Assembly (NCBI GenBank): GCA_030704615.1
Contig: CM060733.1
Location: forward strand, 38,006,001 to 38,070,000
Source: Takakia lepidozioides
Taxonomy: Eukaryota > Plantae > Bryophyta
Direction: 5' to 3'
Length of the DNA stretch: 64,000 nt
Each line of letters opens with the position of its first letter. Within the stretch, counting starts at the first letter, position 1. The position numbers were made by a program, and so were the translations under genes. Positions 25,400 to 55,200 of the stretch are shown here, piece after piece. The notes below the pieces were generated by a model, which saw only the letters and a program-made list of their open reading frames with translations, made no database searches and was not told the DNA's origin.

Positions 25400-26055
25400 T
25401 TCTGATCCTGATAATGGAGACTTCAGTGAGAGATTGAATTCCAGGGAATAAACAGTGGAATCTCCCACAGATCCCATAATACAGAGGGCACTAAATGAAG
25501 AAGTGTTCTTCAGTTTCAATTTCCTGGTTGTGTCTGGTGCAAGCTGGGCATAGGCAATCCCCCCATTGCAGGAAAAGAAAGAGAATGAAATGAAATGGAA
25601 TTTGTAACATCCACAGAAAGCTCAAACCGCTTATGGGACAAAATGGGAAAAAGTAAGAGAGATGAGATTGTAACAGAAAATGGATATTGTCTTCAAGCCG
25701 TCTGCACACTGGGCATTGACAATCTCCTTTCTTCTCTGCATCCGCTTATTGTTCAAAAGTAGACTCCCCACCCTGAGTCAAAATTACAGTAGTGCCAAGG
25801 CTGCCCTTCACTTATCCATGTCACAAACTGGAAACAAGTTCAGGGTTTTATGCCTAACTTTTGTTTGGACATTCTGCACTCTTCCAACATGGCCTTGGAC
25901 ACGTCAGCTTCCAAGTCAACTTCATCTTAGCAGGGTCAGTTCCTCTTGCCTAATATTCAGGTACTTGAAAATCTTCTCTTCCCGTTCCGCCAGGACTTCA
26001 CCTGTTTAATGGGGTTGGACTGGATGTTGGCAGATCCACTACCTTCGTCTCCAGA
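25400..26055 (-). mobile_element. Two decayed LINE 3' fragments abutting the truncated DYW domain
   Basis: CPVCRRLEDNIHFLLQ followed by a (CATTT)n tail (~25585), then a second CPAC..IETEEHFFI*CPLY zinc-finger remnant. Confidence 0.55.
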
Positions 26056-28410
26056 CACAAAACCAATGGCCAGCTTCTCACTGTGGTGGCAAAGAGAAAA
26101 TTCCCTTTCCTCCTCCCCCACATCATGCAATACAAAGCGCTTGTCAGGCACATACCCCGCCTCCTTCATCTGCCAGACAATGTTATCGGCTCAGCATGGA
26201 TTTCCTTAATTCTGGGATGCAACTTGTCATCTACAACGAAGGTGTGCACCCTGTTGCCAACCTCAATGCAGCAGCGACCTGGCTCCTTTCTAACCCCTCT
26301 GACCTTCATCATTCTTCTCACCTTTGCAGTATCATCCCACCTGCCAACTGCAGCATAGATGTTTGATAGCGACACATAAGTTGCGGCATCCTGTTCATCC
26401 CATTTGAGGATAGATGTTGCCGCACGTTCAGCCATCTCCACATTGAGCAGGCATCAAGCAAGGCCTTTCCACACCACAACATCTGGATTGATTGGCATCT
26501 TATTAATCAGATCCACTGCCTCATCCAGTTGTCCTGCACGTCCAAGAAAGTCCACCATACAGCCAAAGTGCTTTACTGACGGAGTGACACCATGATCTTG
26601 ATTTCCTTCATTCAGTTGGCCAGTGTGGCTGCATGCAGAGAGAAACTGTCCGGCTTCAAGCCATTCTTTTGCATTCCTTCAAATAGTTACAGGACCTCCC
26701 TATGACAACCATGCTGGGCATATCCTGCGATCATCGCGTTCCACGACACCACATTTCGTTCAGCCATATTTTCGAACACTCCCTTCGCATCCTCAATGCA
26801 CTCACATTTGGCATACATGTCCACCAGGGCAGTGTTCAGAATACATCGGGTACAATTCCAGCTTTGACGATGTCACCATGGACGTCTTTGCCCTTTTCCA
26901 GGGCTGCCAGCCTTGCACACGCATTGCAAACGGAAACAAACGTGATGTGGTCGGGCTTCACCCCTTCCCCCATCATTTGCTCATAGGTTTCCAAAGCCTC
27001 CATCCCCCGCCCTTGCTGTGCATACCCTGCATCGTTGCACTCCACGACACCAAATCTCGTTCAGCCATACTGTGGAACACTCCCTCCGCATCCTTGATGC
27101 ACCCACATTTTGCATACATGTCCACGAGGGCATTGTTCAAAATGACATCGGGTACAATGCCAGCTCTGACAATGTCACCATGGGCCTCTTTGCCCTTTTC
27201 CAGAGTTGCCAGGCTTGCAAACGCACACAAACGTGATGTGGTTGGGCTTCACCCCTTCCCCCATCATTTGCTCATAGGTCTCCAAAGCCTCCACCCCACG
27301 TCCCTGCTGTGCATACCCCGCAAGCATCGCGCTCCACGACACACATCTCGTTCAGCCATATTGTTGAAAACTGCCTTTGCATCCTTAATGCACCCAAATT
27401 TGTCATACATGTCCACCAGGGCAGTGTTCAGAATGACATCTGGTACAATTCCAGCTTTGATGATGTCACCATGGACCTCTTTCCCCTTTTCCAGGGCTCC
27501 CAGGCTTGCACACGCATTGCAAACACAAACGAACGTGACGTGGTTGGGCTTCACCCCTTCGCACATCATTTGCTCATAGGTCTCCAAAGCATTCGTACGA
27601 CACCCATGCTTGGTAAATCCTGCCAACTTATATTCCATGTGATCAAAGATTGTTGAGGCATTCTGTTGAACACTTGGTGAGCATCCATGATGCTCCCGCA
27701 CTTAACATACATGTTGACAAGGGTGTTGAGTAGAATCCACTTTGGATAATGTCAGTGTGCACCTGCTTTCCAGCTTCAAGGCCTTTTATCTTGATGCACT
27801 TATGCAAGAGACAGACATACGTATTGAATCTGCTGAAATGCCTCCTTGGTTTAAGATCTGTAGAGCCTCTTCCAGTCTGCCTGCCTCACAAAGCATCTTC
27901 ACATGCCCAGAAGTGCCAGAAGAGGCATTGTGGACTCCCTCTCTTGATCCTCTTCCAGAAGCTGTGGTCATGGTTGAGGTGCCTGATTTTATCAACTGTG
28001 CCGCTGTAGCTGCTGCCTTTAGTCGACCATCTACCCATAGAGGTTTCTTGTAGCTATTGATCCACAGGGAATCATAGGTAATCTTGTGCTTGAAATCTGG
28101 CCCTCTTGGATGAATCTGGACCCACACTCTATCCCTGCTCCTTCACCTATCCATGCCTCTGCACAAATCATGCATACATCCTTACCTTGCTGCTAGCAGC
28201 TGACAATGACAGCCTAGATTTGTTCCAGCAAACACCCCAACCCTACTTACCACACTAGTTCCTATGCTGACTTGCGTCTGCTTCCAACAGGCATTCACCT
28301 TTTTGCCTCGATTGTTCCACCATTGACTGGGGTCGGAAACGTATTCATTCCAGAGCTTCTCCTGGTCTCTGTTATCTGTTTTTCGATACTTTCCTGTTGC
28401 CACATTGGCA
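26056..28410 (-). pseudogene. PDF-motif/PLS-PPR/E/truncated-DYW pseudogene
   Basis: Spliced KLWNEYVSDPSQWWNNRGKK|IHPRGPDFKHKITYDSLWINSYKKPLWV running into VKMLCEAGRLEEALQIL; frameshifted PLS repeats; [20 protein letters not shown], then cut before CxxC. Confidence 0.85.
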
Positions 28411-28479
28411 GTAACATGTCAAAATCACTCCAAAACCACCATAGATCCACCAACGAGCTAACTTGCAGAATTCAACATG

Positions 28480-29170
28480 AAAATTTTGGGACGACTCTGA
28501 TAACAGGGAAAACAGGCTGAAATGTGTCGAAGAAGGTGCCTTCATTAGCAGTGCCTTGTTCTATCAATTGTGCTGCTGCCGCTGCTGTTTCCAGTTGACC
28601 ATCTACCAACGCAGATTTCTTATAGCTATTGATCCACAGGGAATCAGAAGTAATCTTGTATTTGAAATCCGGCCCTCTTGGATATACATCCTCAGCCGTG
28701 CTGCTAGCAGCTGACACTGACGGCATGAAGTTCTTCCAGCAAACACCCTAACCGTACTTATTACAGTAGTTCCAATTCTGAATTGCATCTGCTTCTCTCT
28801 GTAGTCCAACAGGCATTCACCTTTTTGTCTCCATTGTCCCACCATTGACTCGGGTCGGAAAAGTGTTCATTCCAAAGCTTCTCCTCATCTCTGTTATCTG
28901 TTTTTGGATACTTTCCTGCTGCCACATTGGCAGTAACTTGTCAAAGTCACTCCTAACCACCACAGATCCACCCAACGAGCTAACTTACAGAATTCAATAT
29001 GCATCTCAGGGCCAAGTCTGATGAGAGGGCAAAACAAGCTGAAATAGGTTGAAGAAGAAGGTGCCCTCACCACATTGTCCTTGACCTTGTGTCATGACCC
29101 ACGCAGGATTTACCCGACTATCAACCCAAAAGGACCTCTTGTGTGTGCTGCTTGTGTCTGTAGTCAGGTC
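28480..29170 (-). pseudogene. Additional degenerate PDF-motif exons (tandem ~525-nt module)
   Basis: EEKLWNEHFSDPSQWWDNGDKK|gt (ends 28821), YPRGPDFKYKITSDSLWINSYKK (~28600-28690), and WVDSRVNPAWV (~29095-29130). Confidence 0.75.
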
Positions 29171-29274
29171 ATGTCGGATCGGTATGTGAGAACCACCATG
29201 GTGCAGCTGAGCAGGCAGAGATTGAAACACGGCCTGCTAAGACCAAGCTGACTCTCCGAAGAACCTTGTAATTA

Positions 29275-30050
29275 TCAGGAAGAATACCAAATCATGGTAC
29301 TAACAGTAGGAGTGAGACCATGATCTTGATTCATGGAATCAAAGTAGTGACATCCTTCATCCACTAGGCCCACATGGCTACATGCAGAGAGAAGAGATAC
29401 GAACGTGATACTTTTGGGCTTCCAGCCTTCCTGTTGCATTCTTTCAAATAGTTGCACACCCTCCCTACCACAGCCATGCTGGGCACATGCTGCTATCATC
29501 CCACTCCATGAGACCAAATCTCTTTTAGCCATGCTGTTGACCACTTGACGAGCATCATTCATGCCCCCGCATTTGGCATACATGTCCCCAAGGGCATTCT
29601 CCAAATTAATGTATGGGACAATTCCAGCTTTCATAACGTCAGCATGGACCTCTTTGCCTTTCTCCAGGGCTCCTAGGCTGGCACAAGCATTGAGAACACA
29701 TATGAACGTGAACCTTCAAAGCTTCCCTACCACACCCATGCTGGGCATATCCTGAAATCACTGCACTCCACGAAACCACATTCTGTTTAGCCATCCTGTC
29801 AAACACTTGCCGTGCATCCATCATGCTCCCACATTTAGGATACATATCGATAAAGGTATTCTCCAAAATGATATCTGTCGCAATTCCACTCTTGCCGACG
29901 GCAACATGGACCTGCTTGCCCATTTCTAGGGCTTGTAGGGTGGCACAGGCATTGAGAATACAGTGAATGTGACCCTGTCATGTGTCACCAGCTCCCGCTG
30001 CATTCGCTCATAGATCTTGCAAGGCTCCCCACCACACCCATAACGTTGCA
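29275..30050 (-). pseudogene. PLS-PPR fragment (L-S-P..P2-L2), frameshifted and truncated
   Basis: [60 protein letters not shown]. Confidence 0.85.
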
Positions 30051-34400: not shown

Positions 34401-37400
34401 CCGATCCAATAAAACTCCTCTCTGTTTCTTCAATTCTTTTGTCCTTTCTGTCTCTATCCTCCGTCCCAAAGCTGATGTCTTCAAAGTGCAATGGTCTAGC
34501 CATCATATAGGCCTCCCTAGAACCCTAGAAATTATTGACCTAGATGTCAGAATTAGCTTTGAAACTTCAATGTTCACCTCATCCTTTTCGAAGGCCTTCC
34601 ACGGTTCGCAGCATGGAGTCTCTCATCACCACAATGCAACAGACTGCGATTGCTCTTCTGGCGGAGCTTCTCCAGATCAAATTGAACAACAGACACATCT
34701 TCTTGCGAATTTGAGGGAATCTGAGCGAATTTGCGAATTTCTGGCATTCTTTGACCACCTACAATGGAGAGCAAGTATGTAGACAGTAAAGCCTCAGCTT
34801 TCAGTCATATACAGATACAGGGTTTGAAATATCTTAAGTCAAGTCTCTCAACTTTAGTCCAAATCCCACATGCAGTGTTCATGCTATGAAGCCAATTGTC
34901 ATAAGGAGGCACTAACCATGTGGAATGGCTTGAGAGGCATAATCACTGGTTTCTTTCTCAGGAGACAAGGTAGCTTCCTCGTCCTCAAGCTCAGTATGCT
35001 TGCTAACATCACCTAGTGACCCCCGGGCCTTTTCGGAATATGTACAACACTTTAATGTGGGAGGTTCTTGGTGGTCAATGCACACTGCTGTGTCCTCCTC
35101 AAGCTCTTCCCTTACCAGTGTTGGTTCTGAAGAGGGGGGAGAAGAACCAATTTCAATGCGCTCCGCACAACAGAAAACTCTGTCTGTCTTTGTCTTGAAT
35201 GCACTACTTTCAACCTCTGACAGTGGAGAAGTATTTTCAAGCCTGGACCTGATCATTACAGCTTCCTTGTTACCAGTTTCCTCATCTTTGGTTAGTGCAT
35301 CCTCCCTGCCACCTCCAAACAACTTTATAAGTTCCCAGCAGACACTACATGATTGCATGGTATATTAATCCATGGATACGCAACTCTTTTGTCATATCAA
35401 AGTAAGCTCTGCTGGTTGGTACGCAGGATGGTACCCAGCCTCACTGCTTGTCCATCCATAACTCCTACTTTTGCCTGATGGCAGGACAAAGACAAATGGA
35501 CAATTGAGATGAACAGAGCTGATACAACAAAAAGGAGACAATTCTGAATACCTCTCTTCCTCGCGAGTCCTCTTGCTTCGGGATATGAACCCAGTGAGCC
35601 GAGATTGAACTATCTTTGAAGGTTCACAGCTAGAGAACCCATTCTTGCTATGAGGCCGAGCTGCCACAGCTAGATGCCCACCTCCACTTGATACCATACC
35701 AACCCTAGGTAGTGAAGCCTTGATAGCACCTTCACATTGAAAAGAGAGGAGATCCAGGGCCGGAGACTTTGCAGGAAGCCCTGATCTAATCTCTTGTCCA
35801 GGCATAGAGAATGGTCTGGTGTCCAATGCCCTTCTGTTCTTGATTGGTTCAATGTCCTCCATTTTTCCTTCATCGGATTGTGGACTTTCTCCAAGACTCT
35901 CAACAGAATCAGCCTCAATAGTGGGTGAGCTAGATTTCTTTGACTTCTCCTCGTCGACTACACATAGTCCGGGGTTGGCAGGTAGCTCCTTCACAGGTCC
36001 GGTTTCTACCTTATTTAGCATGAAAGTGTACTTATCGGGGGCATACACGCGGTCTAGAGCCTCTCTAAGGGCAACCAGGAAAGCATTCTCCATATGTAGG
36101 AACACCTTGCGCTTATCCGGAGTTACATTAACGTCATAGGCTGACGTAGGAAGAATAATGTTTAACACCGCCATTGGGTACTGCATAGAATTGAAGGACT
36201 TGTAAAGCTCATTGAATAATCTGCTAATCTTTGACAGGTCCACTGGCCGACCATTAATATAAAAGAACTGCCGGTCCCCTGAGGCCCTGTAGCAAAGAAC
36301 TAGTGAAAATGTGCGATAATGAAGGACTGCAGATGAAACACCCTTTGCCCTTCTTAGAATCGAAGGAAATAAGAGTCTACCCTCTGGCATTCACTCAAAG
36401 TAACGTCATGAATTGCATTGATAGACGAAAATGGTGGCCTCTAATATTTGTGTTGATTTCCCAGCAAATTTGGAATGTGTACAAACAGCAACGAGAGGGT
36501 GCAAGTTACCTGCCACAGCCTGCCCCAGGCTTGGAAACAAATCCCTCAACACGGCAACCGTCAGATACTGAGAGGTCTAAAGGCTCCAAGCATGCAGCAG
36601 TCTTGCTACCAAAAACAGTGATAATGTTATCCTTGACAGAGCTGCTGCCTTGAGTCTGCAAGACAGTTGATCGTCCACTTTTCCCCACTTGATTGGTGCA
36701 CACCAGACGCACCCCTTTGGCTATTAGGGCGTATGCCTACACATAAACAAGCTGCATCAGGGGCCTTCATGTCCAAATCCAATCCGCTCTTTCTATCTTT
36801 CTTCGCCTTTGGGATTTTCTTTACATTATAAAGCACCATTTCATTTCATTTCATTTACTGCTTCCTCTTCAGTAATTTGGCCAAGTGGAGGATATGGGAA
36901 TGTTAATAAGCACACCCTGACCCCACTGAGACCCAGAATGAGCCCATGAGATACACCAGCATGCCCTTAAGGCTTTGCCACAGACCTACACTGTCCCTCA
37001 GCCTTACTCCCCCTTCACAACAAAGGATACAGCCTTCACCTCATCCCCTCAGGGTTTCAAGAATACTTCTTAGAAACTCCTTGTGAATGGGAGGGAATGG
37101 GGGGTCCTTCGTTTGAAGGATTTTGGTGTGAAAGATCTACCAATGCATGCCAATCACAATTCTCAAACTCCACAGATGCGAGAGAAAGAAAGCAGGGAAA
37201 AACCTATACAATCCACTGGAAACCTTATGGAACAAGAGCGTGGAAAACACTAAGGAACGATGGCCTGAAGACCGAGTGCCTAGTGGAAATAAGCACCCAA
37301 GAATTTATGATCTTCATATCTGGATGCAACATACCTGCAACACAGACAAGAGGCGTCCATATTCACGTCGAATGTTCCGAATGAACTCCTTGTAGCGTAC

Positions 37401-38608: not shown

Positions 38609-40333
38609 CTACCACTATTCACAGCCTCTAAATTCCTGCCACCATGAGGTAGAAACTGGTTATTCTTACAGGAGCGAGACCACCAATCATCAAATTGAGG
38701 TACAGTTGATGCTTACGTCTGAAGAGTCCCAGCGGGTAACTTAAACCCCTTGGTTCTAAGTGAGCCACACAAATGAGCCAACCTGGTGAGGCGAAGATGT
38801 GGCAGGTACAGCCTTATGCTACATCCTGGATTTTACTACTACCCGCACATTTCTAGTTTTGCCACATTGATCTTTTCAGATGCTTCTCATTTGTTAAAAG
38901 TTCGAAAATGTTTGAACATGCAGTCTGGGATTGCTCAGTTCAAAACACCAGATTTCCCTGTCAATGATGCATCTCGCAATCACGGGAGCTCACCATTCAC
39001 TGGTAATCTCTGGCACCAGATCCAGCACAACCCCACAACCGAGTCCAGGATAATTCAATATATCCCCACAATTGTTTCTCGATACCATTAGTCGCCATTC
39101 AGAGTCGCACTCGAGTTGTCTGACAGGGCTAGAGTCAAGCTCAACCTTCCAAAGAGTACGCTTTGGCCCCGAAAGAGCTACGCCAAACTGATGCTGAAAT
39201 TGCCGCCCAACTGCCCTGAGGACTGTGGCACCACTGTCACGGGTAAGAACCAGTAGCCATCTCTCGCAAACTGAGTCTCCCCGCCTTCAATTTCCACAGC
39301 TTCTTCCCACCGTTGATTTCTAATTCTCCCAGAGAAGTACTCAGTCGCGATGGCGAATCTCACATATAGCCCTAATTGATTCCACGGGTTTCACTGGTAG
39401 CAGATTTGAACGATGCTCGAGGGTCTTTGCGCCAAAATGGAGAGACAAACCGTTGGAGCTTATGGTAACTGTATATCTGAGGTGACATGTTGTTATCAGT
39501 TAACAATACTTTGGGGTAGCTTCACAGATAGTTGTAACGAATTACCCCAGCTTTTGATTCTATGAGAGGAAGAGTGTGTGAGTGTGTTGTCCTGCTGAAG
39601 CGTTTTAACTGCCGCCCCTCCACTGCCAAGGGCCAGTCCTTCCAACCATTTCTCTTGAGAGGGTAAAACGTTCCCCATACAAAGTTCGAGTTGAGTTCGA
39701 GACAACAAACAACTTTGTTATCTGAGCTGTTCGTTTCACTTCGAAGCCTGGTGGATTGGTGTGCTTACTCGGGTTTCATAGATGTACTGGCGTCGTGGTC
39801 ATGCAGTGGGGTTTTCTGGTGCACTTGTTTCACTAGGAGAGACTGCATGCAACAGGCACCTATGGACATTACACATTACCTCTTCTTGACCACAACATGT
39901 GGGGAAGTATTACTAACAAGGTGTTGATCTCTTGTGGGATGACTCTATTTCCATGCATCGGAAATCTGATATGGCCGAAGATTTCATGACTCTTGATCTC
40001 CATCCACTCCCCCACCCAACAGGAATGTGTTTCTCAAATAAAGATGACTCCAACACAATGTGGGTTTACTGAAATTAAGTCGCCCCCTAATTTTTTAAAG
40101 ATGGGTCTTCTTCAAACACAACTTCGGTATCATGTGCACCATTTCAACATCACATCGTGAAGACCAGAAAAGTAAACTGCTCAGTGCTTCAGCAATCTGG
40201 CCCATATCAGTGTGCCAGTCACTCCAACAAACTGTGCGCCTTGAGGACCCCTTCTTCCTCAATAATTTGGTTATCCCCCCTTGTTTGATGGCATGTGCAG
40301 TCATTCACTTTCTCTCATGCATGTCACATTGTT

Positions 40334-42580
40334 TCACCAGTAATCCCCACAGGAACAAATCCCATCTTGGAAGTGGTGAAAACGGTTGACATCGCGCAGA
40401 ACAATTAATCGCCCTACAATCTTTGAGATGAACTTGGTGGCAGTGTGACAGTCACCGCACACACGAAGGTTCTTGATGACATGGACGGGCGTCTCAGGGG
40501 GTGTGCTGATCAGGCCAAGAGCAATGGCCAGCTTCTCACTATGGTGGACAAGTGAATATTCCTTCTGCTCCTCCTCCACATCATGTAGTACAAAGCTTGT
40601 GTCAGGCACATACCCAGCTTCCTTCATATGCCCAGACAATCTCTGCAGCTCAGCATGGATTTCCTCAATTTGTGGATGCAATCTATCATCTACAAGGAAT
40701 TTATTCACCCGGTTGTTGATCTCAATGAAGCTGCATCCTTGCTCTTTTCTCACACCTCTGTCCTTCATCAATTTTCTCACCTTTGCCTTATCATCCCACC
40801 TGCCAGCTGCAGCATAGATGTTAGATAGCAGCACATAAATTGCAGCTTGCTCTGGGTGCCACTTGAGAAGGCATTTAGCTGCATGTTCCGCTAGCTCCAC
40901 ATGACCATGAATTCTGCAGGCACCAAGCAAGGCCCCCCACACAGAAGCACCTGGTTCGACTGGCATTTTGTTAATAAAATCCTCTGCCACATCCAATTGT
41001 CCTGCACGGCCAAGAATGTCTACCATGCAGCCAAAGTGCTCCTCTGTAGGAATTAGGCCATGATCTCGAGTCATGGAATCAAAGTAGTGACAACCTTCAT
41101 CTACTAGGCCCACATGGCTACATGCAGAGAGAAGAGATACAAAGGTGATAGCATCTGGTTGCAAGAATTCCTGTTGCATTTGTTCAAAGAGTTGGATGGC
41201 CTCCCTGCCACACCCATGGTGAGCATATCCTGCAATCATAGTGTTCCATGAGAACAAATCTTGTTGGGTCATTTTGTCAAACAATTGATGTGCAATCTTT
41301 ATGCTCCCGCATTTGCCATACATATCAACAAGGGTATTCTCCAGAATGATATCTGGCACAATTCCACTTTTGCTGATTCCAGCATGGACATCTTTGCCCG
41401 TTGCCAGGGCTCCCAGACTGGCACACTGTTTGAGAATGCAATTATATGTGACCATGTCAGGCGTCACCCCTTCCTGTATCATTTGCTCGTAGATCTCAAA
41501 AACCTCCCCACCACACCCATGCTGAGCGTATCCTGCAATCATGGCATTCCATGACACCACATTCCGTTTAGCCATTTTGTCGAAGACTATACGTGCATCC
41601 CTTATGCTCCCACATTTAGCATACATGTCGACAAGGGCAGTCTCCAGAATTGTCTCTGGAGCACTTCCGGTTTTGATAATATCAGCATGGACAGCTTTGC
41701 CGTTTTCTAAAGTTCCTAGGCTGGCACACACATTAAGAATACAAATGAATGTGACTGTGTCAGGGGCAAAATCTTCCTGTTGCATTTGCTTGTAGATCTC
41801 GAAAGCCTCCCCGGCGCAACGATGCTGAGCATATCCTGCAATCATGGCATTCCATGACACCACATTGCGGTTGGTCATATTGTCAAAAACTTGACGCGCA
41901 TCTTCTATGCTCCCGCATTTGGCATACATATCAGCCAGCGCAGTCTCCAGAATCATATCTGGCCCAATTCCAGCTTTGATAATGTCAGCATGGACCTGTT
42001 TCCCTTTTTCCAGGGCTCCTAGGCGGGCACACGCATTGAGAACACAAACAAATGTGACCTTGTCGGGCATCATCCCTCCCCATTGCATTTGCTCATAGAT
42101 CTCCAAAGCCTCCCTACCGCAGCCATGCTTGGCATATCCTGCCATCATTATAGTCCACGTAAACAGATTTCGTTCAGGCATTTTGTCGAACACTTGCCGT
42201 GCATCCATCAGACTCCCGCACTTGGAATACATGTTGATTAGAGTGTTGAGTAGAAAGATGTTTGGCTTGAATCCACTTTTGATGATGTATGCATGCACCT
42301 GCTTTCCCTTTATTAGGTCTTTCATGTTGATGCACTCCTGCAAGACACAGACATAAGTTTTGCAGTCTGTCCACATGTCCCATCGGTGCAAAGTATTCTG
42401 CACTTTTTCCAGTCGTCCAGCCTTACATTGTGTACTCACATGCTCACACGTGCCAAGAGAGTCCTCGTTGACTCCTGGCCTCGATCTTCTTTCTAAGGGG
42501 GTGGCAGTCACAATGGTGGACATGGTAACCCTGCCGCCAGTCTGCCCAACAACAATCTGTAGCTGATTCAGCCCTACCAT
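40334..42580 (-). CDS. PLS-class PPR protein with E1/E2 and complete DYW deaminase (C-to-U editing factor), main exon
   Basis: 748-aa ORF, 14 PLS motifs, HHSEKLA and CGDCH zinc ligands, terminal CSCGDYW. Confidence 0.95.
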
Positions 42581-42768
42581 CCTGCATGACTTGCAGCTCT
42601 TAGATACAATTGCAAATATATCTCAGAGCTCTCAGATACTTAATCAAAAGATCTCTTCATGAGGACAGCATCCTTGCTACATACTTCAGGGGTTGCAAAC
42701 CTATATTTCTTATCTACTTCGAAGAAAAACTGAACAATTCTTCATATTTGAGTTTGAAACCAAAATAC

Positions 42769-43265
42769 CTGTTGTATTCTAGGGCCAGCTCCCCATGGTG
42801 CACAAGGACATTAGGACTACCACCACATTGTGGTCGTAGTAGTGTCATGGCAGCTAGCTCTCCAAGGAGGGTTGACCATCCCTCAATCCAAAGGACCTCT
42901 TTTGTGCATTTATCTCTTTAGTCTGCCGCTTTGGGACTTTTCTCTGAAAACCATTGGTTGCCAACTGAGGAACCATAGCTCAAGCACATCTTCCTGTAGA
43001 CCAGATTGCAGACACAAAAGCACCGGTCATCTTTCAAAAATCACAGGTGCCAACATTGAATAATTATACCTCTGCTGTTACCTTTTAGAGAAAATTGTCA
43101 TGAATTCAGGAGATAAATCCATGCACAAAACATCATCATGCGAGCTTTAGTCACACCACCTCCTGTCAAAAACTTTGGAGTCCGAAATGAAGGTAAAATC
43201 ACCTTATCAAAGCTGTTGTCCCACCACTCTGAAGGGTATGACAGGAAATCCTGTTCTGTGCTCAT
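42769..43265 (-). other. Two upstream exons encoding a damaged PDF motif, spliceable in frame to the PPR-DYW ORF
   Basis: 43265-43203 MSTEQDFLSYPSEWWDNSFDK|gt; 42941-42769 KSPKAAD*RDKCTKEVLWIEGWST..EYN; GT-AG intron 42768-42582 restores R-MVGLNQ; TAA at 42918-42920. Confidence 0.75.
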
Positions 43266-46061
43266 TCTGGTCTGCATGCAACAACTGCGAGGACATGAGA
43301 ACGTTCCAACTACATAAGAGGATACGTCACAGCAATTTTCAAAGGGAACAATCTATGCATTCATCTCCCTGACACTCCATCAGTTGATTGCCCTGCACTA
43401 TTTGAGAAGGACATCACGACGCTGTAGCTCCTGCATTACGAAGTTAACTCACAATGCTTGCACTTCTAGGAACTTCCAGAGGACTTCAGTGGGTCATGTA
43501 GGGAGCCCGGATCTCACCAATTACAGACCAAAACGACACGCCAGAATGACAGTTGTTATTCCAATTGCGGCTCTACACTGCTCACACCACTCGGTGTCTC
43601 ATCTGTGGTAACCAGCCCCCTGCGTTACCGAGTGAGCTCAACACTTTTTCAGCAACTTGCAGTGAATTTCCGTGGGCCCTTATGGAGCCTGGATGTCAGC
43701 AATTACAGACCCACAAAAAAACCCATAAATTATTCGTATTTACCTTTCTTCCGTTTCCATACAAGATGGGGAGGTGTCATATCCATCACTTGCAAGGGTG
43801 TCCAGCCCGGAAGACCCAAGGTGGATACCAATTGCAGTTTCACAGTCTCGCCCTTGAAGCTGTTGCATTATGTCAGGCATCCCGTCCATTTCCTCGGATG
43901 TACTCTGCCTGCAAGCTCAAAGTATGTTTACATGGACCTGAGAAGCTCCGGACTCGTCCTGGCCCTCCAAGGAAACTGCCTTCAGAGAAAGACGAGGAAG
44001 TGGAAGAACTGAGAGTTTTTCACATCAAGTAATTCGACCGGGTATGTCCAGTCCTTCCAGTCGTCAACCGTTATGTACGAAAATACAATATTTGGACATA
44101 CTGTACATATGTTAGTAGTCTCAGTCTCGTATGTTGGGGACCCGAATGCCCTCTAGCTTCTGGGAGCTCGAGAGTGTGCAGAAATCGCAGCTATGGCAAT
44201 GGCCCTCCTCGCCTATCTCGAGAAATTTGTGAAATGAATTTTGGTTCTCCTCCTCGTGATCTTGCAGTTCCCCAATTTTTCAAGCTTTTACAAAAAGGCC
44301 CAGAATTTGGAGAGTGAATCTAAAACTTCGTCCTTCCTTTTCTTCCATCGCAGCTCTGTGCATTCAAGTTGCTAGAAGACCAGTACCTGGCGATGATGTC
44401 AGCTATAGAACAATCTTGACCGGGTTCCCCTTTAAGATGAGAGACACGGTCCTCTGATAGCAATGCTGTGAAGGACATGGCGATTGCACTGGCTGCAATC
44501 TGGTCGAGAGAGAGAGCTCGATTGGTATCTCGTGCGCAGCCTCACTGGGTTGATGAAAGATTGTAGTAATTGGTTGTACGTGTAGATTGTGAATTCAGAG
44601 GCACGGGCCGGAGAATTGGCCCTACCGAATTGGAGGACGACGGAGGGCTTTGTCCGCCATATGTTAGTGCCTGGGTGTTGAGGTGGGATCGTATATGAAT
44701 GTGCGAGATTTTCGGAGCACGTGGTGGCAGACCAATGTTGAGAGATTGGGAGGTTCATCTCTCTAGTGCTTTTTGCAAAGGACAAATGAATTGTTGGCCA
44801 TGGTGCCTGCAAACCTTTCCGCCATGCCTTCAGCTGTCCTCTCTCAAGCCAAGGGAGGTGGAAGGAAAGATGGAGGGTCGTCTACCTCAGGGTTGTCTGG
44901 AACTCCAGCGACCTCAGCTGCATCCATGAGCTCCGGGTCTGCTGGGGACGACCCATTATCTACCTCCCCTACGGTAATCGCTTCCCTCTGCTACTCGAAG
45001 TGCAGCTTTGGTATTCAAGTTTTTGCTCGAATTTAGGTGTTGAAGTCTGCGAATAAGGAGTATTTTTTTCAAGTTTGTGACTTTGATACTCAGGATTAGA
45101 AATAGAACAACGTGCCAGGGCAGCCAAAGCTAACTGAGCCAACAAAACCACTGGCAGCTTTTCGGAAAAGACACTTGCAGCAGATCTTGTACATTGGAAC
45201 CTATCACATTTTAGGCCTTTTAAGTAACATGCCTGAGTTTCACTCTGTAAATTGCGTTGCAAGTGTGACGTGATTGATCGAGCTTTTGTTATCTCACAAG
45301 AGCGACGCAAGAGAGATTAGACTCTTAGACTCTTGTTATCTTTGACGTTTCTTCTGTGGGATGCGAAAGGGATTTTTGATCTGTGTACTGTGGGCGGGCA
45401 GTCTTTTCTCCCCAAAATCTCAAAGGGATCCACCCAAGCTGAGACTCAAAAGGAGGATGCTCGAACACCTTTGAATTTTCTGTAAGTCTGCCCCCAGAGG
45501 AACTTTTCAAGTATCTCTGTCCAGACTTTTGCTTCACCTAGTCACTTTGTCTATGATTCTACAGGTGGTCAGTGTGCTTTGTCCTCTTTGTGCACACCAC
45601 ACACATGCACTTTTGATAGTTGGCGATGACCTTTCCTTCTGGGAACCCTCTCAGAGCCAATTTCAGGCACAACACCTTCACCTAGTCACTTGTGTGTATG
45701 ATTCTGGAGGTGGGCAGTAGGTGTTGCCCTGCATGTGCAGAAAGAGCAAGATGTACTTATTGATAGTTTGGTAATTCTTTCTGTCTAAGGATAGTCCTGC
45801 AGAATGCTAAGTGGCAGTTGTAGGGCTTTCAGTCACAAGGGTCTAAGAGGAGAGAGGGAGATGCTGGCTGGCCGGCATTTCCTGTTTCACAAGTTAGTGA
45901 TCAAGGTTTTTGGGTTATAAAGTTTGATCGGGGATCCAGAAAAGAGAGAGGGAGAAAGAGAAAGAAGAAAGAGAGACATGTATTATGCCCATGGGAGGCT
46001 CAAGAGCCTTAGGGATACACGTAGAATAACGCAGTAGAACCATAGAGACCCCACACAGAGA

Positions 46062-49200: not shown

Positions 49201-52200
49201 CAGCCTGATGCGGCTGATAGAGAGGATGATCCCACTGGCGAGGAAAGTAATGGTGGCCGGCCACAGCTGAAAGGGTGGGCAAGGTATAATAGTGGTATCC
49301 GTGCGTCCCCAGGTCCAGTGGAGGGCCCTTCAGGTCTCCTTCTGTCAGGGTCAAGGTGGAGAATGGAACAATCCACAAAGAAAAAAAGCCCAGGAGAAGT
49401 TTCAGAGAGTGGGGTGTTGTTGGATGAGATCGTGAAGAGGAAAGGAGGTCCAAGATTTTGCAGCACCAGCCTGCTCAAATGTGGGCCTGTCGTACTTGAG
49501 ACGTCTCGCAGCGTATCTGCATGAGGCATTACATCTAGACAATCCGTTCATCAATAATTGTTGTTGTTGGGCTGCTTGTTTGTGGGCCCCATTTTCTTTC
49601 TTGTATCCTGCTTTCTCTTGTCCTGTAACAATATGAAGTACCATTTCCATTCATTTCATATCTCTCTGTGGTTCTACTATGTTTTCCAGCCTGTTGCCCA
49701 TGGGCCCTCAGGACCCTCAGTGAGCATCAAAAAGTGTCTTTCTTTCCTTTTTCTTTCTTGTACTAAGGTATTTTCTTCTTCTCTCAAGCTTTCTTGCTTT
49801 TCTCTTCTCAAGGCTTTGGCAAGCCCTCGCAATGAACCCCAGAGCAGCTTCAGTTGATGCTTTATTTGAGCGTCTGTGGGTGTTGTAAATGAATAATGTT
49901 ATCTATTGGCCAGATTCTGGTTGTTGACCTCAGTACTGGTGAGACAACACCCCACCTAGTGTAAAGGCAATGTGTGGTTTATTAAAATTGACAAGTAGAT
50001 CCTGCACCTATACATCTGTGAGGCAAGTTTCATACAGAGGTATCCCTTTGTGGACTTTTATAGGTTTGCATCAAATTATAGACACGAGTTATGTGTTCTA
50101 TGTGATATTCACATACAGGAGAATGGCTTTTGTCCCTTTGAGGGAATAATCTCTGACCAGATCTATCCAACTACAGTTTGGTGAGAACGGGTTTGGTAGA
50201 TGATGGGGAAAAGAAGTCTATGTGAACCAGATCGGTGATATCTAGTAACAGAGTGGAATCTAATGGAAACTATGGCAGACACAGTTGTCAAGGGAAAAAG
50301 ATGCCAGGATCAAGGGACTGGTGCAAGAAGCAGGTTTATTCAAGAAAAGGTCCAAGGAAGCTACCTGCAGTAAAGATGAGATAGGGGGGTTTCTGCAAAT
50401 GGTGATGGCAGATCGTGATACTGCTCAGGTGACTTCTCTCTCTGTCTCTCTCTCTCTCTCTCTCCCCCCTCTCCCTGTCCTCTAGGAAGCCTATTGACAT
50501 TGGTGGACTTGATACGGGAGTACAATAATGTCTCTGTGACTAAATGCCGGCCTTGTGACCTCGTGTCCTTGTTTGTTTCGACCTGAAGCGCTTTGCTTCA
50601 GGTAAGGTAGTGCATTGGATTTAGTTGGAAAGCTTGGGGCCTTTCCCTCTTTAGAATATGCCTACACGGGCCATTCCCTGCAACTCCCTGGAGTGTGATC
50701 TCTGAATGGTAACAAGCGGACTCCTACCGCTTGGGGGCAGCCCCCCCGCCCAAATTGGGCAGTCGTATGCTCTGTCTAGCATACTCGGCACTTGGGCTCG
50801 GGTTGGTTCCTGTGCTTAAACTTATAGCCTGCGAGAACAATCAAAATTTTAGCTCCTATCAACATCAACACTCCTCAGGGTGATCCCTGGGAATTGGTTA
50901 CTTATCCCAAATCTAGGGCTTCATGTGTAGTTTTTGGGGTGAATCCCAGGATGGACGATGTGTCCTTTAAAACTACATGCTCTAGCTTAGGCTTGGATTT
51001 CATGGCTAATGGTACCATCTCGAGACTTGATAACAGGGGTACGTTGAAGGTTGCAATGACCAAAAGTGCTTCTAATAGAGTCCCACATCAATTCAATCTC
51101 AAAGAAGTTCGTCCCTTGACTGGCTGGAGAGCGGTCTTAGACATTGGTGATTCAATGGGGCGCTCTAGGAAGACAACCAAGGGCAACGACTTCAACTTGA
51201 GAGTTTCTAATCGGTTTGATGCTCTGGATGAGGTTGAATCCAAACAGCCAGAAGGACAAGATGCCCCTAAGTGTACGGAACCTGAACGTCCTGAATCTGA
51301 AGGATTTGGTACTCTGAATGGTTTACCAATCCTCAAGGTTTACACAAGACGAACTAATTCTATACACGGGGTAATTGCCCCAAGCCGTCAGATGGACAAT
51401 CTGTCCCTAAGTGTGCAGAGCCTGAACGTCATGTAACTGAAGGATTTGGTACTCTAAATGGTTTACCAATCCTCAAAGTCTACACAAGACGAGCAAAATC
51501 TATACACGGGGTAATTGTCCCCAAGCAGTCTGACGGACAATCTGCCCCTATGTGTGCGGGAGCCTGTGCGTGGTGTAACTGAAAGATTTGGTACCCTGAA
51601 TGGTTTACCAATTCCCAAAGTTTACACAAGAAGAGCAAAATCTACACATGGGGTAACTGTCCCCCCTTTGCAGAACGGTTGGCCGTCCAGGAGCAATCAC
51701 AAGCTACCTAGACGACAAACAATTCACATGCAAAGGGCTGGCTTGCGGCTGGCCACTTTCAACTTCTCAGGGTTGACCAACCAAAGGAAACAACTCGAAG
51801 TGGGACAAGTTCTTTGGACTAATGATATTCATATCTGTGCTGGGCAAGAAACATGGGAAACGTCGGATAAACTGGTTGGAGATGTCAATGGTTATAAATG
51901 GGCAGGTAAGATGTGTACTCTCAAGGCAGCCTCTGCCAAACGCGGTCAAAAAGGGGTTGGATTCTTTGTCCGTGATTTCTTGTTTGACAATTGTGAAATT
52001 ATCAACAAGGGTTTGAGGTACGAGCATAGTATCTGGCTAAAACTGAATCTGAAGGGCGGCATGAGTACAAAGGACCTCTTTGTGGGTTGTGTTTACATGC
52101 CCACAGAGGGGACCCTTAGTGCTGACGCAGACAAAGCCTTCGAAGATGTAAAGCTGGACTGTGCTTTGTTCCTTGCCAAAGGTCAGGTGGTACTATTGGG

Positions 52201-55200
52201 GGACTTCAATGCCCGGGTGGGCAAAGGGATCCATCAGGACGATATCATTGGACCTTTTGGTGAGGACGAGCTGAATTCTAATGGCGGACGGTTAATTAAC
52301 TGTCTAGAAGAGCTTCAGCTTTTGACCTTGAATAACAGGACAAGAGGTGACCAAGTGCAGTGGACTCGTGAGAAATCCCAAACTGGGGAACGTTCCATTG
52401 TGGACTATATCATAATGGACAAAATTTTGTTCCCCCAGTGTGCCAATGTGTTGATCGACAGAACTGATATTGGTACCTCTGACCACTTCCTGGTTTGGAC
52501 TGAGATCAAAAGGTGTTTTCCCACCACCAAGAGGTGAGACGTACCACATTCGGAAGTGGCGCATAGAAAAATTCCACAATGAGGAGGTCAAGGCTGAGTA
52601 CGTCCAGGCTACGGTCAGCAAGTACAAGCGCTGAAGACTACTAAAGGTGCAGTGGTGACTTCATCGGTTGACATTGTCAAAACCTTTGAAACTCACTACA
52701 GTATCCTTGGCAGAACTTCTAGGTCTAACAGTGAGGGGTCTTCTGCTGAATGGAGGGACACAGTTGGAAAAACTGTTCCTATGATTCAAAACAGCCCTGA
52801 TGAACTGGAGTATATTTCAATGGCTTATAATGCTCCCATTAGTTCTTCTGAGATTGTGGAAGCAATTGAACATTTAAATGGATATAAAGCTGGTGGACCT
52901 GATGGTATTGTCAACGAGCTTATCAAGCACGGTGGCGATCCCATGATAGAGGCCCTAGTTCTCCTCTTTAACCTTATCTGGAAGACTGAAATGATCCCCT
53001 TTCGCTGGCGACAGGGGGTCATTGTCAATCTATACAAGAAGGGTGACAGAGAAGAACCGGGGAACTACCATGGCATCATGCTCCTCAATGCTGTTGGCAA
53101 GACATTCTGCAGAGTTATAAGTACTCGTCTCGAGGTTGATCTGGAGTCCAGAGGTTGTTTCCACGAAGGCCAAGCTGGCTTTCGGCGAAACAGGGGCTGT
53201 GTGGATCATATCTTCACTCTAAGCCAGATTATCCAGGGAAGGAAAAAAGAAGGGAAACCCACTTATGTCTTTTTCCTGGATGTCAAAAAGGCTTATGACA
53301 CAGTGTGGAGGGATGGCCTATGGTTCCGCCTCTGGTCTTGTGGGATCAAGGGAAAGATGTGGAGAGTTGTCCACAACTTGTATGCTCACACCAAAAGCTG
53401 TGTCACTGTTAATGGACAGAAGTCCAACTTCTTTGACATAGACCAAGGTGTAGCTCAAGGATGTACTCTCTCCCCTCTGCTCTTCAATGTTTTCATCAAT
53501 CAACTCCTCGAGGATGTGGAAAGTGAGGGATTTGGGTTAAGGGTGGGTGATACCACCATACCAGCCCTTATGTTTGCGGATGACTTCGCAGGCATAGGGG
53601 AGACTCCAACCAATCTCCAGGAGTTGATTGATTGCGTGAAGAGATACTTTGATCTTTGGGGGCTAGAGGCTAATGTCAGCAAATGTGCAGTGGTAGCATT
53701 CAACGACAGAGGAGAGGGAGGAAGTGATCTTAAGTGGCAGTGGGGTAGCCAAGAGATCCCGGTCCTCCCTTCCTACACTTACCTGGGCGTTGAGTTTTCC
53801 TCCAATTGTAATTGGGATGTACATATCCGGAAAGTTGTTCAAACTGGCAAGGGCAAAGCTCTGGGGCTCACTAAATTTTTCCACTGCAGAGGGGTCAACT
53901 CTGAGGTTAAGAAAACCATGCTTTGTCGCGTTATTAGACCTGCCTTGGAGTACGGATCTGCTATATGGGTTGACAACTCCAACCAGGCTAAGTCTCTAGA
54001 ATCCATTCAAGTGGGGGTGCTTAAGGAGTGTATGTCAGCATGCTCCAAAACAGCCAATGTGGCTGTTCGGGGTGAGTTTGGCATTCCGTCCTTAAGCTCC
54101 CAACGAGATGAATTCAAGGTCAGATGGTGGGGTCAGCTGCAACATATGCCCAACACCAGATATCCTAAGTTAATCGACTCTATATCTTGGAAACAGGACC
54201 GCCCTGTCAAACAGGCTAAGTCCTGGCAGAAGAGAGTAGAAGAGATTCTCAAGGACCTGGACCTGGATCCGCAAGCCTTGACCCTGCTGGATAAATCTGA
54301 CTTAGAGGCTGTAGTGTCCTCAGCCATGTCTGTTGCCATGAGATTGTCTGATGAAAATGAAGTTAGGCAGAAAACTTCCCTGAACTTGTTTCCAGTCAGT
54401 GACATGGGGGAGGACATCTTGGGGTCCCCTCAAGGGCCTACCCACTCTCGGCACTAGACTGAAATTTAAACTCAGGGCAGGAAGCCTACCTTTGAACAGC
54501 AAACAGAAGCAGAGAGGAAAGGGAGAGTGCAATTGCCCGCTGTGTGGGCAATCTGAAGACAGTATTCACTTTCTGATACACTGTCCGGGGTTCTCTCACC
54601 AAAGAGACGCTCTCTTCAAATCTATTAAGGGAATTGTGCCTGTACCCCTGTTTACCAACTTTGACAGTCTCGAGGCTGAGCCAAAAGCCCAGGCCCTCCT
54701 GAGGCCTAGTTTTTGGGCAAATCACACACAGCAGATTGATGCTTGTGTGAAGGGATTTCTAGAGGATATCTGGAAAACCCGGATTAATTCTTTATATGGA
54801 GGTAAGTCTTACTACCAACGTCAGCCCCTGACAGAGGTAGGTTCTGTCCCTTTTGTTCCCGCTCAAACTGGGCACAGGGTCAATGGCCACAAGGCTACGG
54901 CAAACAACGTCTTATGAGTACAATCTATCAAGGGAATTGTGCCTGTTCCCCTGTTTAACAATTATGAAAGTCTCGAGGCTGAGCCAAAAGCCCAGGCCCT
55001 CCTGAGGCCTAGTTTTTGGGCAAATCACACACAGCAGATTGATGCTTGTGTGAAGGGATTTCTAGAGGATATCTGGAAAACCCGGATTAATTCTATATAT
55101 GATGGTAAGTCACACTATCAACGTCAGCCCCTGACAGAGGTAGGTTCTGTCCCTTTTGTTCCTGCTCAAACTGGGCGCGGGGTCAATGGCCACAAGGCTA

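Follow-up and report, generated by a model that had tools for sequence, protein, structure and literature searches.

A transcribed relic of the PDF motif upstream of an open PPR-DYW reading frame in Takakia lepidozioides

On the minus strand of a 64,000-nucleotide stretch of Takakia lepidozioides DNA (the window), peptides resembling the OSB-type PDF motif lie directly upstream of a long PPR-DYW reading frame, raising the question of whether the locus encodes an in-frame PDF-PPR-DYW fusion or whether it has lost its PDF module and kept its deaminase. An earlier interpretation made from the letters alone (the sequence-only reading) had proposed that three exons join in frame, with a single TAA as the only interruption, and that this copy may have shed the module and start at ATG 42848 or ATG 42580. 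We compared this model with profile searches and with assembled RNA contigs, and the resulting features of the locus are given in Table 1.

Table 1. Features of the locus, numbered on the window.
Feature	Position	Strand	Basis or remark
Exon 0, non-coding 5' leader	43744-44300, runs on to at least ~44373	-	ends AAG/GTAAAT
Intron 0 (GT..AG)	43272-43743	-	splice sites read; X5 depth 0 over 43273-43725
Exon 1, 69 nt, relic of first PDF half (TRMSTEQDFLSYPSEWWDNSFDK)	43203-43271	-	RNA inclusion deduced, not directly seen
Intron 1 as spliced in RNA	42994-43202	-	X5 record 13 and X6 record 22: exon 2 begins 42992/42993
Exon 2, 225 nt, relic of second PDF half, frame +1 relative to exon 1	42769-42993	-	X5 record 13, X6 record 22
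Relic of second PDF half, KSPKAAD-(stop)-RDKCTKEVLWIEGWSTLLGELAAMT	42827-42941	-	HMM match and alignment to PRGPDFKHKITYDSLWI
TAA at Phe position of P-D-F signature	42918-42920	-	sequence, DNA contig and RNA contigs
Intron 2 as spliced in RNA, GT 42768-67 .. AG 42543-42	42542-42768	-	X5 record 13 joins 42769 to 42541
Main ORF in spliced RNA, ATG 42523 (ACCATGT), 729 codons, stop TGA 40336-40334	40334-42523	-	frame bookkeeping on observed exons
PLS-class PPR array, ~15 motifs, (P)-L-S-P-L-S-P-L-S-P-L-S-P2-L2-S2	40910-42451	-	Pfam; boundaries read from translation
E motif, residues 558-620 of 748-aa ORF	40721-40909	-	PF20431
DYW cytidine-deaminase domain, residues 656-748	40337-40615	-	PF14432; conservation against 117 DYW proteins

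The open reading frame at 40334-42580 (minus strand, 748 codons) was free of lesions on re-reading, as had been claimed for it, and has a PLS-PPR/E/DYW layout. Its PPR array was matched by the Pfam models PPR (3.2e-75, in 10 stretches) and PPR_2 (1.1e-74), with blocks of 101 aa (35+35+31) legible in the translation. The E motif was matched over the full profile (PF20431, positions 1-63 of 63, 8.5e-21), the E+ motif weakly (0.0078) and the DYW domain again over the full profile (PF14432, positions 1-93 of 93, 5.4e-42), and the signatures H680-S-E682, C708-G-D-C711-H and a C-terminal DYW are all present. Of 81 E/DYW columns with a conservation of 90% or more, 5 deviate (7 if two alignment-edge gaps are included; the median of the other proteins is 3), the deviations including Q for P in the PG box, F for W in SWIE and L for F in LAIAFG. 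A word search with residues 1-130 returned no close orthologue, the best matches being Ginkgo models with 48-60% identity in the PPR part only. From the P/S code of the repeats, the predicted target leading up to the edited C is approximately 5'-Y G n A U n A U n U U n n NNN-C. Only about 25 residues stand before the first PPR-like motif in the main ORF.

Upstream of this frame, the two peptides that the sequence-only reading had described were read again in the sequence, the first (...DFLSYPSEWWDNSFDK) ending at 43203 and followed by GT, the second (KSPKAAD-(stop)-RDKCTKEVLWIEGWST) starting at 42941 and containing the TAA at 42920-42918. A profile HMM of 169 PDF units, all taken from database proteins (consensus e.lW.dLf.nP..WWDNR..K.NPk.PDFKHK.TGeALWlnS.aP.WV), matched the first half at 43256-43170 (7.3 bits, i-E 0.0014) and the second at 42947-42879 (3.3 bits, i-E 0.026). 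These are the fifth and sixth best PDF matches in the six-frame window, adjacent to each other, in the correct order and on the strand of the gene. The peptides had been proposed to align to the PDF profile, and they do so, with a similarity that is weak and of relic grade. The low individual scores would fit a chance resemblance in the 5' UTR of an ordinary PPR-DYW gene. So would a blastn search of the window with 42300-44400, in which the relic matched none of the other PDF exons at DNA level (the sole match, at 69%, joined 42491-42300 to 27954-27764); the homology of the relic thus rests on protein-level tests. Pfam holds no model that matches the PDF peptides, whether relic or intact.

Both halves nevertheless scored above every control (reversed window, at most -6.8 bits; 30 window shuffles, at most -0.6), and comparison of the relic with the window's own PDF halves gave a z of about 5.5, a score reached by 0 of 2000 shuffles. 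Position argues in the same direction: intact copies, too, have the intron that splits the motif at this K/gt site, and in the window's paralogue, as had been claimed, the AAG runs to 28299 and is followed by GT at 28298-28297. The likeness also continues past the motif into an ELAA(I/M) stretch common to the Sphagnum protein P0224. Judged on these sequence comparisons, the resemblance is more than chance, and we regard an accidental likeness as extremely improbable.

Evidence for how these exons are spliced came from assembled contigs, and that the runs behind them are RNA was a guess which the splice pattern supports. X5 depth falls to zero across the introns and past the 3' end, which marks X5 as RNA rather than DNA. 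The 827-nt X5 record 13 aligned to 44063-43744, 42992-42769 and 42541-42329 on the minus strand, with GT-AG sites at its junctions and 0 differences over 42769-42992, and a contig from a second run (X6 record 22, 42873-42992) has the same exon 2 start. Exon 0 is based on the alignments of X5 record 13 and of X5 record 14 (44300-44041), the latter carrying 73 further letters past 44300. Within the ORF, RNA contigs matched without differences at 40339-40438, 40450-40658, 41224-41346 and 41529-41636, and X6 record 15 (40033-40356) covers the 3' end and UTR. Contigs of this kind drop rare variants and are silent on isoform proportions, minor isoforms and the transcription start.

Exon 1 was placed by contig-length arithmetic. 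X5 record 13 contains 70 unaligned letters, which equal the 69 nt of exon 1 plus the G at 42993, and the sum 320+69+225+213 is 827, the length of the contig, so exon 1 and its donor 43203 are probably used in RNA. The only other 69-nt candidate between AG and GT in the bin with unexplained depth is 43228-43160. The PDF exons therefore share a transcript with the PPR exon, directly for exon 2, which X5 record 13 links to it, and by this deduction for exon 1.

These junctions bear on the splice sites that had been proposed. Donor 42769 is used, as predicted, and donor 43203 probably so, whereas the proposed acceptors 42941 and 42581 are replaced in RNA by 42993 and 42541. AG 42943-42942, the ancestral acceptor of intron 1, is homologous to the acceptor of the paralogue (tccag followed by ATTCATCCA, at 28116/28115) and is unused in the contigs. 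At the position of intron 2, the window's paralogue and Sphagnum P0224 have neither an intron nor a long linker, and P0003 has a long linker. Around this intron a search for a transposon signature (terminal inverted repeats, target duplications) gave nothing convincing, and an Rfam search of 39500-45500 gave no match.

An in-frame fusion mRNA, possibly a minor isoform, spliced through 42941 and 42581 with the TAA as its sole interruption, would still have some footing in the sequence, as AG dinucleotides are present at 42943-42942 and 42583-42582, the frames do join when these acceptors are used, and a rare variant would be dropped by contigs. No contig uses either acceptor, however, and the contig joining 42769 to 42541 accounts for the whole of the X5 depth in the bins 42518-42668 and 42669-42819, and over 42542-42668. 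Translation of such an isoform would in any case end at the TAA, seen in the RNA too, and its PDF would have neither P, F, R, H, G nor PxWV. The available contigs thus show 42769 joined to 42541 and not to 42581, the outcome that the sequence-only reading had itself named as telling against its model, and we consider an in-frame fusion mRNA very improbable.

With the acceptors used in RNA (42993 and 42541), the two PDF halves share a frame neither with each other nor with the PPR ORF, and the PDF frame carried across the 42769 to 42541 junction meets a stop at 42510. Both start codons that had been suggested fall with this pattern: ATG 42580 lies inside the intron removed from the RNA, and ATG 42848 opens a 37-codon uORF in a frame other than that of the PPR array, which ends at 42510 and overlaps the main ATG. 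The first ATG of the PPR frame after its last stop in the spliced RNA is ATG 42523, preceded by a leader that is at least 943 nt long and contains 22 ATGs. Its uORFs include those at 43265 and 42848, and a 48-codon one still encodes the first PDF half.

The state of the motif itself was then assessed residue by residue, with the two relic halves aligned to the profile separately. The TAA at 42918-42920 is no assembly error: one DNA contig (X1 record 8) and two RNA contigs that come from other samples and studies (X5 record 13 and X6 record 22) carry it with 0 differences. Of the consensus residues at 50%, 70% and 90% conservation, 12/27, 8/18 and 5/10 survive in the relic, with medians of 22, 16 and 10 for database PDF units at the same thresholds (5th percentile 8.4 for the columns of at least 90%). 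In its P-D-F signature the P has become A, the D is kept and the F is replaced by the TAA; R, H and G of the core are lost, and LW and PxWV are absent, as had been noted. No uninterrupted frame crosses the relic motif, which is broken by the in-frame TAA and by the +1 shift that acceptor 42993 introduces. Set against the 76/81 near-invariant residues retained in E/DYW, the 5/10 retained in PDF represent a significantly greater loss (Fisher p = 0.001), which shows that the PDF module was shed while the deaminase ORF stayed open, in agreement with the suggestion that this copy had lost it.

Taken together, we think that this is probably a nuclear land-plant gene for a PLS-class PPR-DYW organellar C-to-U editing factor whose PDF exons are now non-coding leader. 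The gene would descend from a PDF-PPR-DYW family with an OSB-type PDF motif in small upstream exons; these exons are still transcribed and spliced but have ceased to code, through residue loss, the TAA and shifted acceptors. As acceptors 42993 and 42541 put them out of frame, the former PDF exons would have no role left but that of a long, uATG-rich 5' leader. The product from ATG 42523 is predicted to have 729 aa and to consist of a PDF-less PPR array with E motif and DYW deaminase, which may be translated, imported and active in editing one site, its ORF presumably held open by selection during the decay of the PDF.

The same transcript could instead come from a young unitary pseudogene, a gene still expressed but on its way to death, which lost its start and targeting together with its PDF and presequence exons, the ORF being open only as the loss is recent and the uATG-laden transcript not being productively translated. 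The 22 uATGs and the uORF overlapping the main ATG, from which poor translation can be argued, would fit this account and weigh against a working editing factor, as would the loss from the ORF of the ancestral N-terminus with any transit peptide, organelle import of the product being putative, and the slightly more than typical deviation of E/DYW (the 5 near-invariant changes lie at about the 90th percentile of the comparison set). The PPR-DYW part of locus 1 (26056-28127), the neighbouring paralogue, is dead, and simulated neutral drift leaves the ORF without a stop with a probability of 0.16 at 2% divergence; the values of 0.017 at 5% and about 0 at 10% speak instead for selection on the ORF. 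Against recent death stand the catalytic residues, all of them intact, and RNA whose expression is steady and whose splicing is correct in each of two independent samples. The PDF is moreover far more decayed than E/DYW (5/10 against 76/81, as above) and the relic shows no similarity at DNA level to the other PDF exons of the window, which together indicate that the ORF stayed open over a long decay of the PDF. We therefore consider a dying gene possible but rather unlikely, and prefer a functional editing-factor gene with a non-coding PDF leader.

On its own the locus is an ordinary PPR-DYW gene and a degenerate family member. As one more independent and diverged copy, it adds to the PDF-PPR-DYW architecture as a family trait, and it shows how a module can be shed: the exons stay in the mRNA, donors are kept, acceptors slide, frames break and a uORF-rich leader results. 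Together with the neighbouring locus, where a good PDF accompanies a dead PPR-DYW, this suggests that the survival of one part is not tied to that of the other, and such independence bears on the role of the PDF module in editing factors. A bolder interpretation, which we offer as speculative and doubtful, is that of a natural 'PDF-deletion' experiment in an apparently undescribed PDF-PPR-DYW family, where selection kept the deaminase ORF long after the PDF had decayed and the formerly coding exons were re-used as a regulatory leader, with the 48-codon and 37-codon uORFs throttling translation of the editor. If true, at least some editing factors would be able to do without the PDF.

Among known systems, the nearest database proteins are Ginkgo biloba Gb_22769 (P0118), other Gb_ models and PPR-DYW proteins of Cryptomeria and Taxus, with 65-71% identity in the E/DYW region. 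With land-plant PPR-DYW factors this locus shares a P-L-S array followed by E1/E2 and a complete DYW with HxE, CxxC and terminal DYW, and a whole PPR-DYW part contained in one coding exon. Unlike those factors, it has a long multi-exon 5' leader made of coding exons that have decayed, very few residues ahead of the first repeat, Q rather than P in the PG box and F rather than W in SWIE.

The closest parallels in architecture are proteins in which a PDF lies upstream of a PPR array on one transcript, as at this locus. Sphagnum fallax BDL97_05G099200 (P0224, a hypothetical protein of 637 aa) has a complete PDF at residues 62-118 followed by PPR-DYW, P0011 (a Logan protein of 1371 aa from SRR4210093) has 3 PDF units with PPR and E on one 4755-nt assembled contig, P0003 (a Logan protein of 680 aa) is a PDF-PPR fusion, and in the window's paralogue (28925-26056) the fusion recurs (28925-27990). 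These occurrences, among them independent public proteins, bear out the proposal that PDF-PPR(-DYW) fusion characterises a family and is real elsewhere, rather than being a chance juxtaposition, and a search for literature linking the PDF motif or OSB with PPR or DYW found no paper describing it. The present locus shares with the paralogue the intron that splits the motif after WWDNxxxK, and with the fusion family the ELAA(I/M) stretch after the motif. It differs from the fusion proteins in that its PDF is out of frame and interrupted by the TAA, with half of its conserved residues gone, leaving a predicted protein without PDF. The paralogue is the reverse case, with PDF units that look good and a PPR-DYW broken by frameshifts and a truncated DYW. 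DNA depth suggests that the genome carries many paralogues.

Beyond the fusion family, a profile made from the good PDF halves in the window retrieved proteins of OSB architecture, among them P0014 (SSB at 137-234 with 3 C-terminal PDF units), and also P0017 (Sinapis alba) and P0016 (Welwitschia). The PDF motif of AtOSB1 is reported to be sufficient for ssDNA binding (PMC6963530). Of the OSB motif the relic retains P..WWDN...K..PK..D...K.T.E.LW. (LW being listed as absent above). Unlike OSB proteins, this locus has no SSB/OB domain, its motif is a non-coding relic, and that motif sits on a putative RNA-editing factor rather than on a DNA-binding protein.

The minus-strand PPR-DYW gene, with its ORF ending at 40334 and its leader reaching at least about 44373, is a degenerate copy in a family of PDF-PPR-DYW genes, the PDF being a motif of about 50 residues found in organellar single-stranded DNA-binding (OSB) proteins and the PPR-DYW part a PLS-class RNA-editing factor. 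Since the motif is without any Pfam model, a profile was built independently of this gene, using as query an alignment of the window's two good second halves (27981-28115 and 28553-28690). Among 1.84 billion representative proteins, 100 matched at E <= 1e-3, including P0017 from Sinapis alba and P0016 from Welwitschia, most of them measuring 250-600 aa and matching in 2-12 stretches. P0014 carries a Pfam SSB domain at residues 137-234 (1.2e-15) and then three C-terminal PDF matches, which is the OSB architecture as defined in PMC6963530. An HMM of 169 whole PDF units cut from the protein matches (consensus e.lW.dLf.nP..WWDNR..K.NPk.PDFKHK.TGeALWlnS.aP.WV..kL), run with every filter off on the six-frame translation of the window, found eight places only (see table), with best control scores of -6.8 on the reversed window and -0.6 over 30 local shuffles.

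Both halves of the relic upstream of the deaminase gene matched the profile above all controls, and direct comparison with the window's PDF halves gave z of about 5.5 (0 of 2000 shuffles attaining the score). The first half, ...TEQDFLSYPSEWWDNSFDK, ends at 43203 with GT next, the second, KSPKAAD-stop-RDKCTKEVLWIEGWST..., starts at 42941 with TAA at 42920-42918, and GT directly follows 42769, all as a sequence-only reading had stated. Its proposed shared intron also stood: the relic is split after K at the motif position shared by the other PDF units of the window, where AAG ends at 28299 and 28821 in the paralogue locus 1 (25957-29230, minus strand), each then gtgaatgcc, and acceptor 42942/42941 is homologous to tccag/ATTCATCCA at 28116/28115. 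These scores, with the right order and strand, the place directly upstream of the PPR-DYW ORF and the family's intron position, establish at sequence level that the relic is homologous to the PDF motif.

The relic is badly decayed: of the residues that at least 50%, 70% and 90% of database units share, it keeps 12/27, 8/18 and 5/10, where those units have medians of 22, 16 and 10 (5th percentiles 17, 14 and 8.4), and blastn within the window found no DNA-level similarity left to the other PDF exons. The TAA was confirmed in RNA contigs of both samples and a DNA contig. DNA-contig depth in run X1 was about 1236 at 43122-43272 and about 218 at 42820-42970, where single-copy sequence has about 62, so short stretches around both relic exons occur in many genomic copies of >=95% identity; close paralogues with the same decayed leader may exist.

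Splicing was read from Logan contigs, of which X1-X4 are DNA runs of one sample and X5 and X6, guessed to be RNA, come from other samples and studies. X5 behaved as RNA, since depth in its intron-flanking bins equalled the contribution of record 13 alone and was zero over 43273-43725 and past the gene's 3' end. This 827-nt contig lies on 44063-43744, 42992-42769 and 42541-42329 with canonical boundaries throughout, and its 70 unlisted letters fit exon 1 (43271-43203) plus G 42993, as 320 + 69 + 225 + 213 is exactly 827. Contig-length arithmetic thus argues strongly that exon 1 is included; the one bin whose X5 depth is not accounted for contains a single alternative 69-nt AG..GT stretch, 43228-43160. 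In X6, record 22 has the identical exon 2 start, and record 15 runs through the stop codon into about 300 nt of 3' UTR. X5 contigs matched unique parts of the ORF with 0 differences; the sole difference, 42449 C>T (plus strand; synonymous ACG>ACA in gene sense) in an RNA contig of sample S2 against the assembly, appears to be a polymorphism rather than RNA editing. Intron 0 contains a 62-nt direct repeat (43651-43711 and 43468-43529, 79% identity).

Positions of the PDF halves, ORF domains and splice sites
Feature	Positions	Strand	Detail	Source
Long ORF	42580-40334	minus	748 aa	translation
PPR repeats in ORF			PF01535 3.2e-75, 10 stretches; PF13041 1.1e-74	Pfam
E motif in ORF			PF20431 8.5e-21, profile 1-63 of 63 (full)	Pfam
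DYW deaminase in ORF			PF14432 5.4e-42, profile 1-93 of 93 (full-length)	Pfam
Relic first half	43256-43170	minus	7.3 bits, i-E 0.0014	PDF HMM
Relic second half	42947-42879	minus	3.3 bits, i-E 0.026	PDF HMM
Locus 1 tandem PDF units	28925-27990	minus	two good units, before broken PPR-DYW	
Locus 1 good first halves	28901-28815, 28379-28293	minus		
Locus 1 good second halves	28690-28589, 28118-28017	minus		
Locus 1 four good halves			37.3, 24.3, 18.5, 16.9 bits	PDF HMM
Locus 1 third, decayed unit	29189-29087		1.9 and 0.2 bits	PDF HMM
Donor, exon 0	after 43744	minus	AAG/GTAAAT	
Acceptor, exon 1	before 43271	minus	tgcatgcag/ACC	
Donor, exon 1	after 43203	minus	AAG/GTGATT	
Acceptor, exon 2	before 42993	minus	tctacag/GAAG	
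Donor, exon 2	after 42769	minus	CAG/GTATTT	
Acceptor, PPR exon	before 42541	minus	gttgggcag/ACTGGC	

Acceptors had been proposed at 42941 and 42581, but the contigs use 42993 and 42541 instead; record 13 joins 42769 to 42541, and no contig links 42769 to 42581 or retains intron 2. Exon 2 begins 52 nt before the homologous acceptor, which sets the second PDF half +1 off the frame of the first. The end of intron 2 lies 40 nt further downstream than proposed, so that the PDF frame does not run on into the PPR ORF but meets a stop at 42510. After splicing, four stops in exon 2 close the PPR frame, whose first ATG is 42523 (ACCATGT), giving 729 codons behind a leader of at least 943 nt with 22 upstream ATGs, among them one at 43265 whose 48-codon uORF still encodes the first PDF half. 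Neither suggested start codon fits: ATG 42580 lies inside the spliced-out intron, and ATG 42848 opens a 37-codon uORF overlapping the main ATG. The suggestion that this copy shed its PDF held, given the 5/10 near-invariant residues, the TAA and the frame.

Read from the translation, the motif order of the 748-aa ORF is (P)-L-S-P-L-S-P-L-S-P-L-S-P2-L2-S2-E1-E2-DYW, with H680-S-E682, C708-G-D-C711-H and a C-terminal DYW. By the published PPR code, the fifth and last residues of the P and S motifs (NN, TD, TN, ND, TN, ND, ND, ND) would predict a target in which roughly Y G n A U n A U n U U precedes the edited C.

The gene is probably a live, PDF-less editing factor, which would have kept its ORF and shed the PDF module. 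Every domain and every catalytic residue is intact, and expression and splicing were seen in contigs of two samples. E/DYW keeps 76/81 near-invariant columns against 5/10 in the relic (Fisher p = 0.001), and in a substitution-only simulation the chance of a stop-free 729-codon ORF fell from 0.017 at a neutral divergence of 5% to about 0 at 10%, whereas the PDF exons have diverged past blastn recognition. These same data speak against a recently disabled gene that is still transcribed, which we consider possible but rather unlikely; it would accord with the uATG-laden leader, the loss of the ancestral N-terminus and any presequence with it, and a few unusual residues (the PG box has Q in place of P, SWIE has F in place of W, and LAIAFG has L in place of F).

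Elsewhere in the window, two adjoining ORFs of 308 and 235 aa at 20786-22420 (plus strand) match DDE_Tnp_1_7 of piggyBac-type transposases (3e-21 and 1.6e-38) and are probably one gene split by a stop. A 332-aa ORF at 35392-36390 (minus) has a MutL/PMS1 DNA_mis_repair domain (1.6e-19); PMS1/PMS2-like proteins come closest to it in the database, at <=46% identity, and it probably represents a single large exon of a PMS1 gene. A LINE-type retroelement at 51515-54457 (plus) has an Exo_endo_phos endonuclease ORF, then an RVT_1 reverse-transcriptase ORF (2.4e-33).

The PDF-PPR architecture is not confined to this gene. The tandem PDF units of locus 1 (27990-29230, minus) have a period of about 520 bp, and PPR fragments lie upstream at 29275-29965. 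Its PPR-DYW part (25957-28127, minus) is cut by frameshifts into ORFs of 50-145 aa and ends after HSEKLAIGF without CxxC or terminal DYW, which marks it as a pseudogene. With good PDF and dead PPR-DYW, locus 1 is the mirror image of the studied gene, with its decayed PDF and intact DYW; the neighbours, having lost opposite halves, form a natural contrast, and the studied gene shows how the PDF module was lost. No paper in the literature searched describes a PPR protein that bears a PDF motif. Among the database matches, P0143 and P0181 are gene models starting inside the PDF and P0085 is a fragment. Recurrence in locus 1, P0224, P0003 and P0011 bears out the sequence-only reading of a family architecture, not a chance juxtaposition, which with the shed PDF outlasts its splice model and start codons. 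Sphagnum fallax BDL97_05G099200 (P0224) has a PDF at 62-118 (E 2e-24, PDF HMM) and then PPR-DYW; P0003, third-best match to the studied gene's N-terminal region, has one at 63-119 (PDF HMM); and P0011, encoded on a 4755-nt contig assembled from run SRR4210093, joins 3 PDF units, PPR and E in one ORF.
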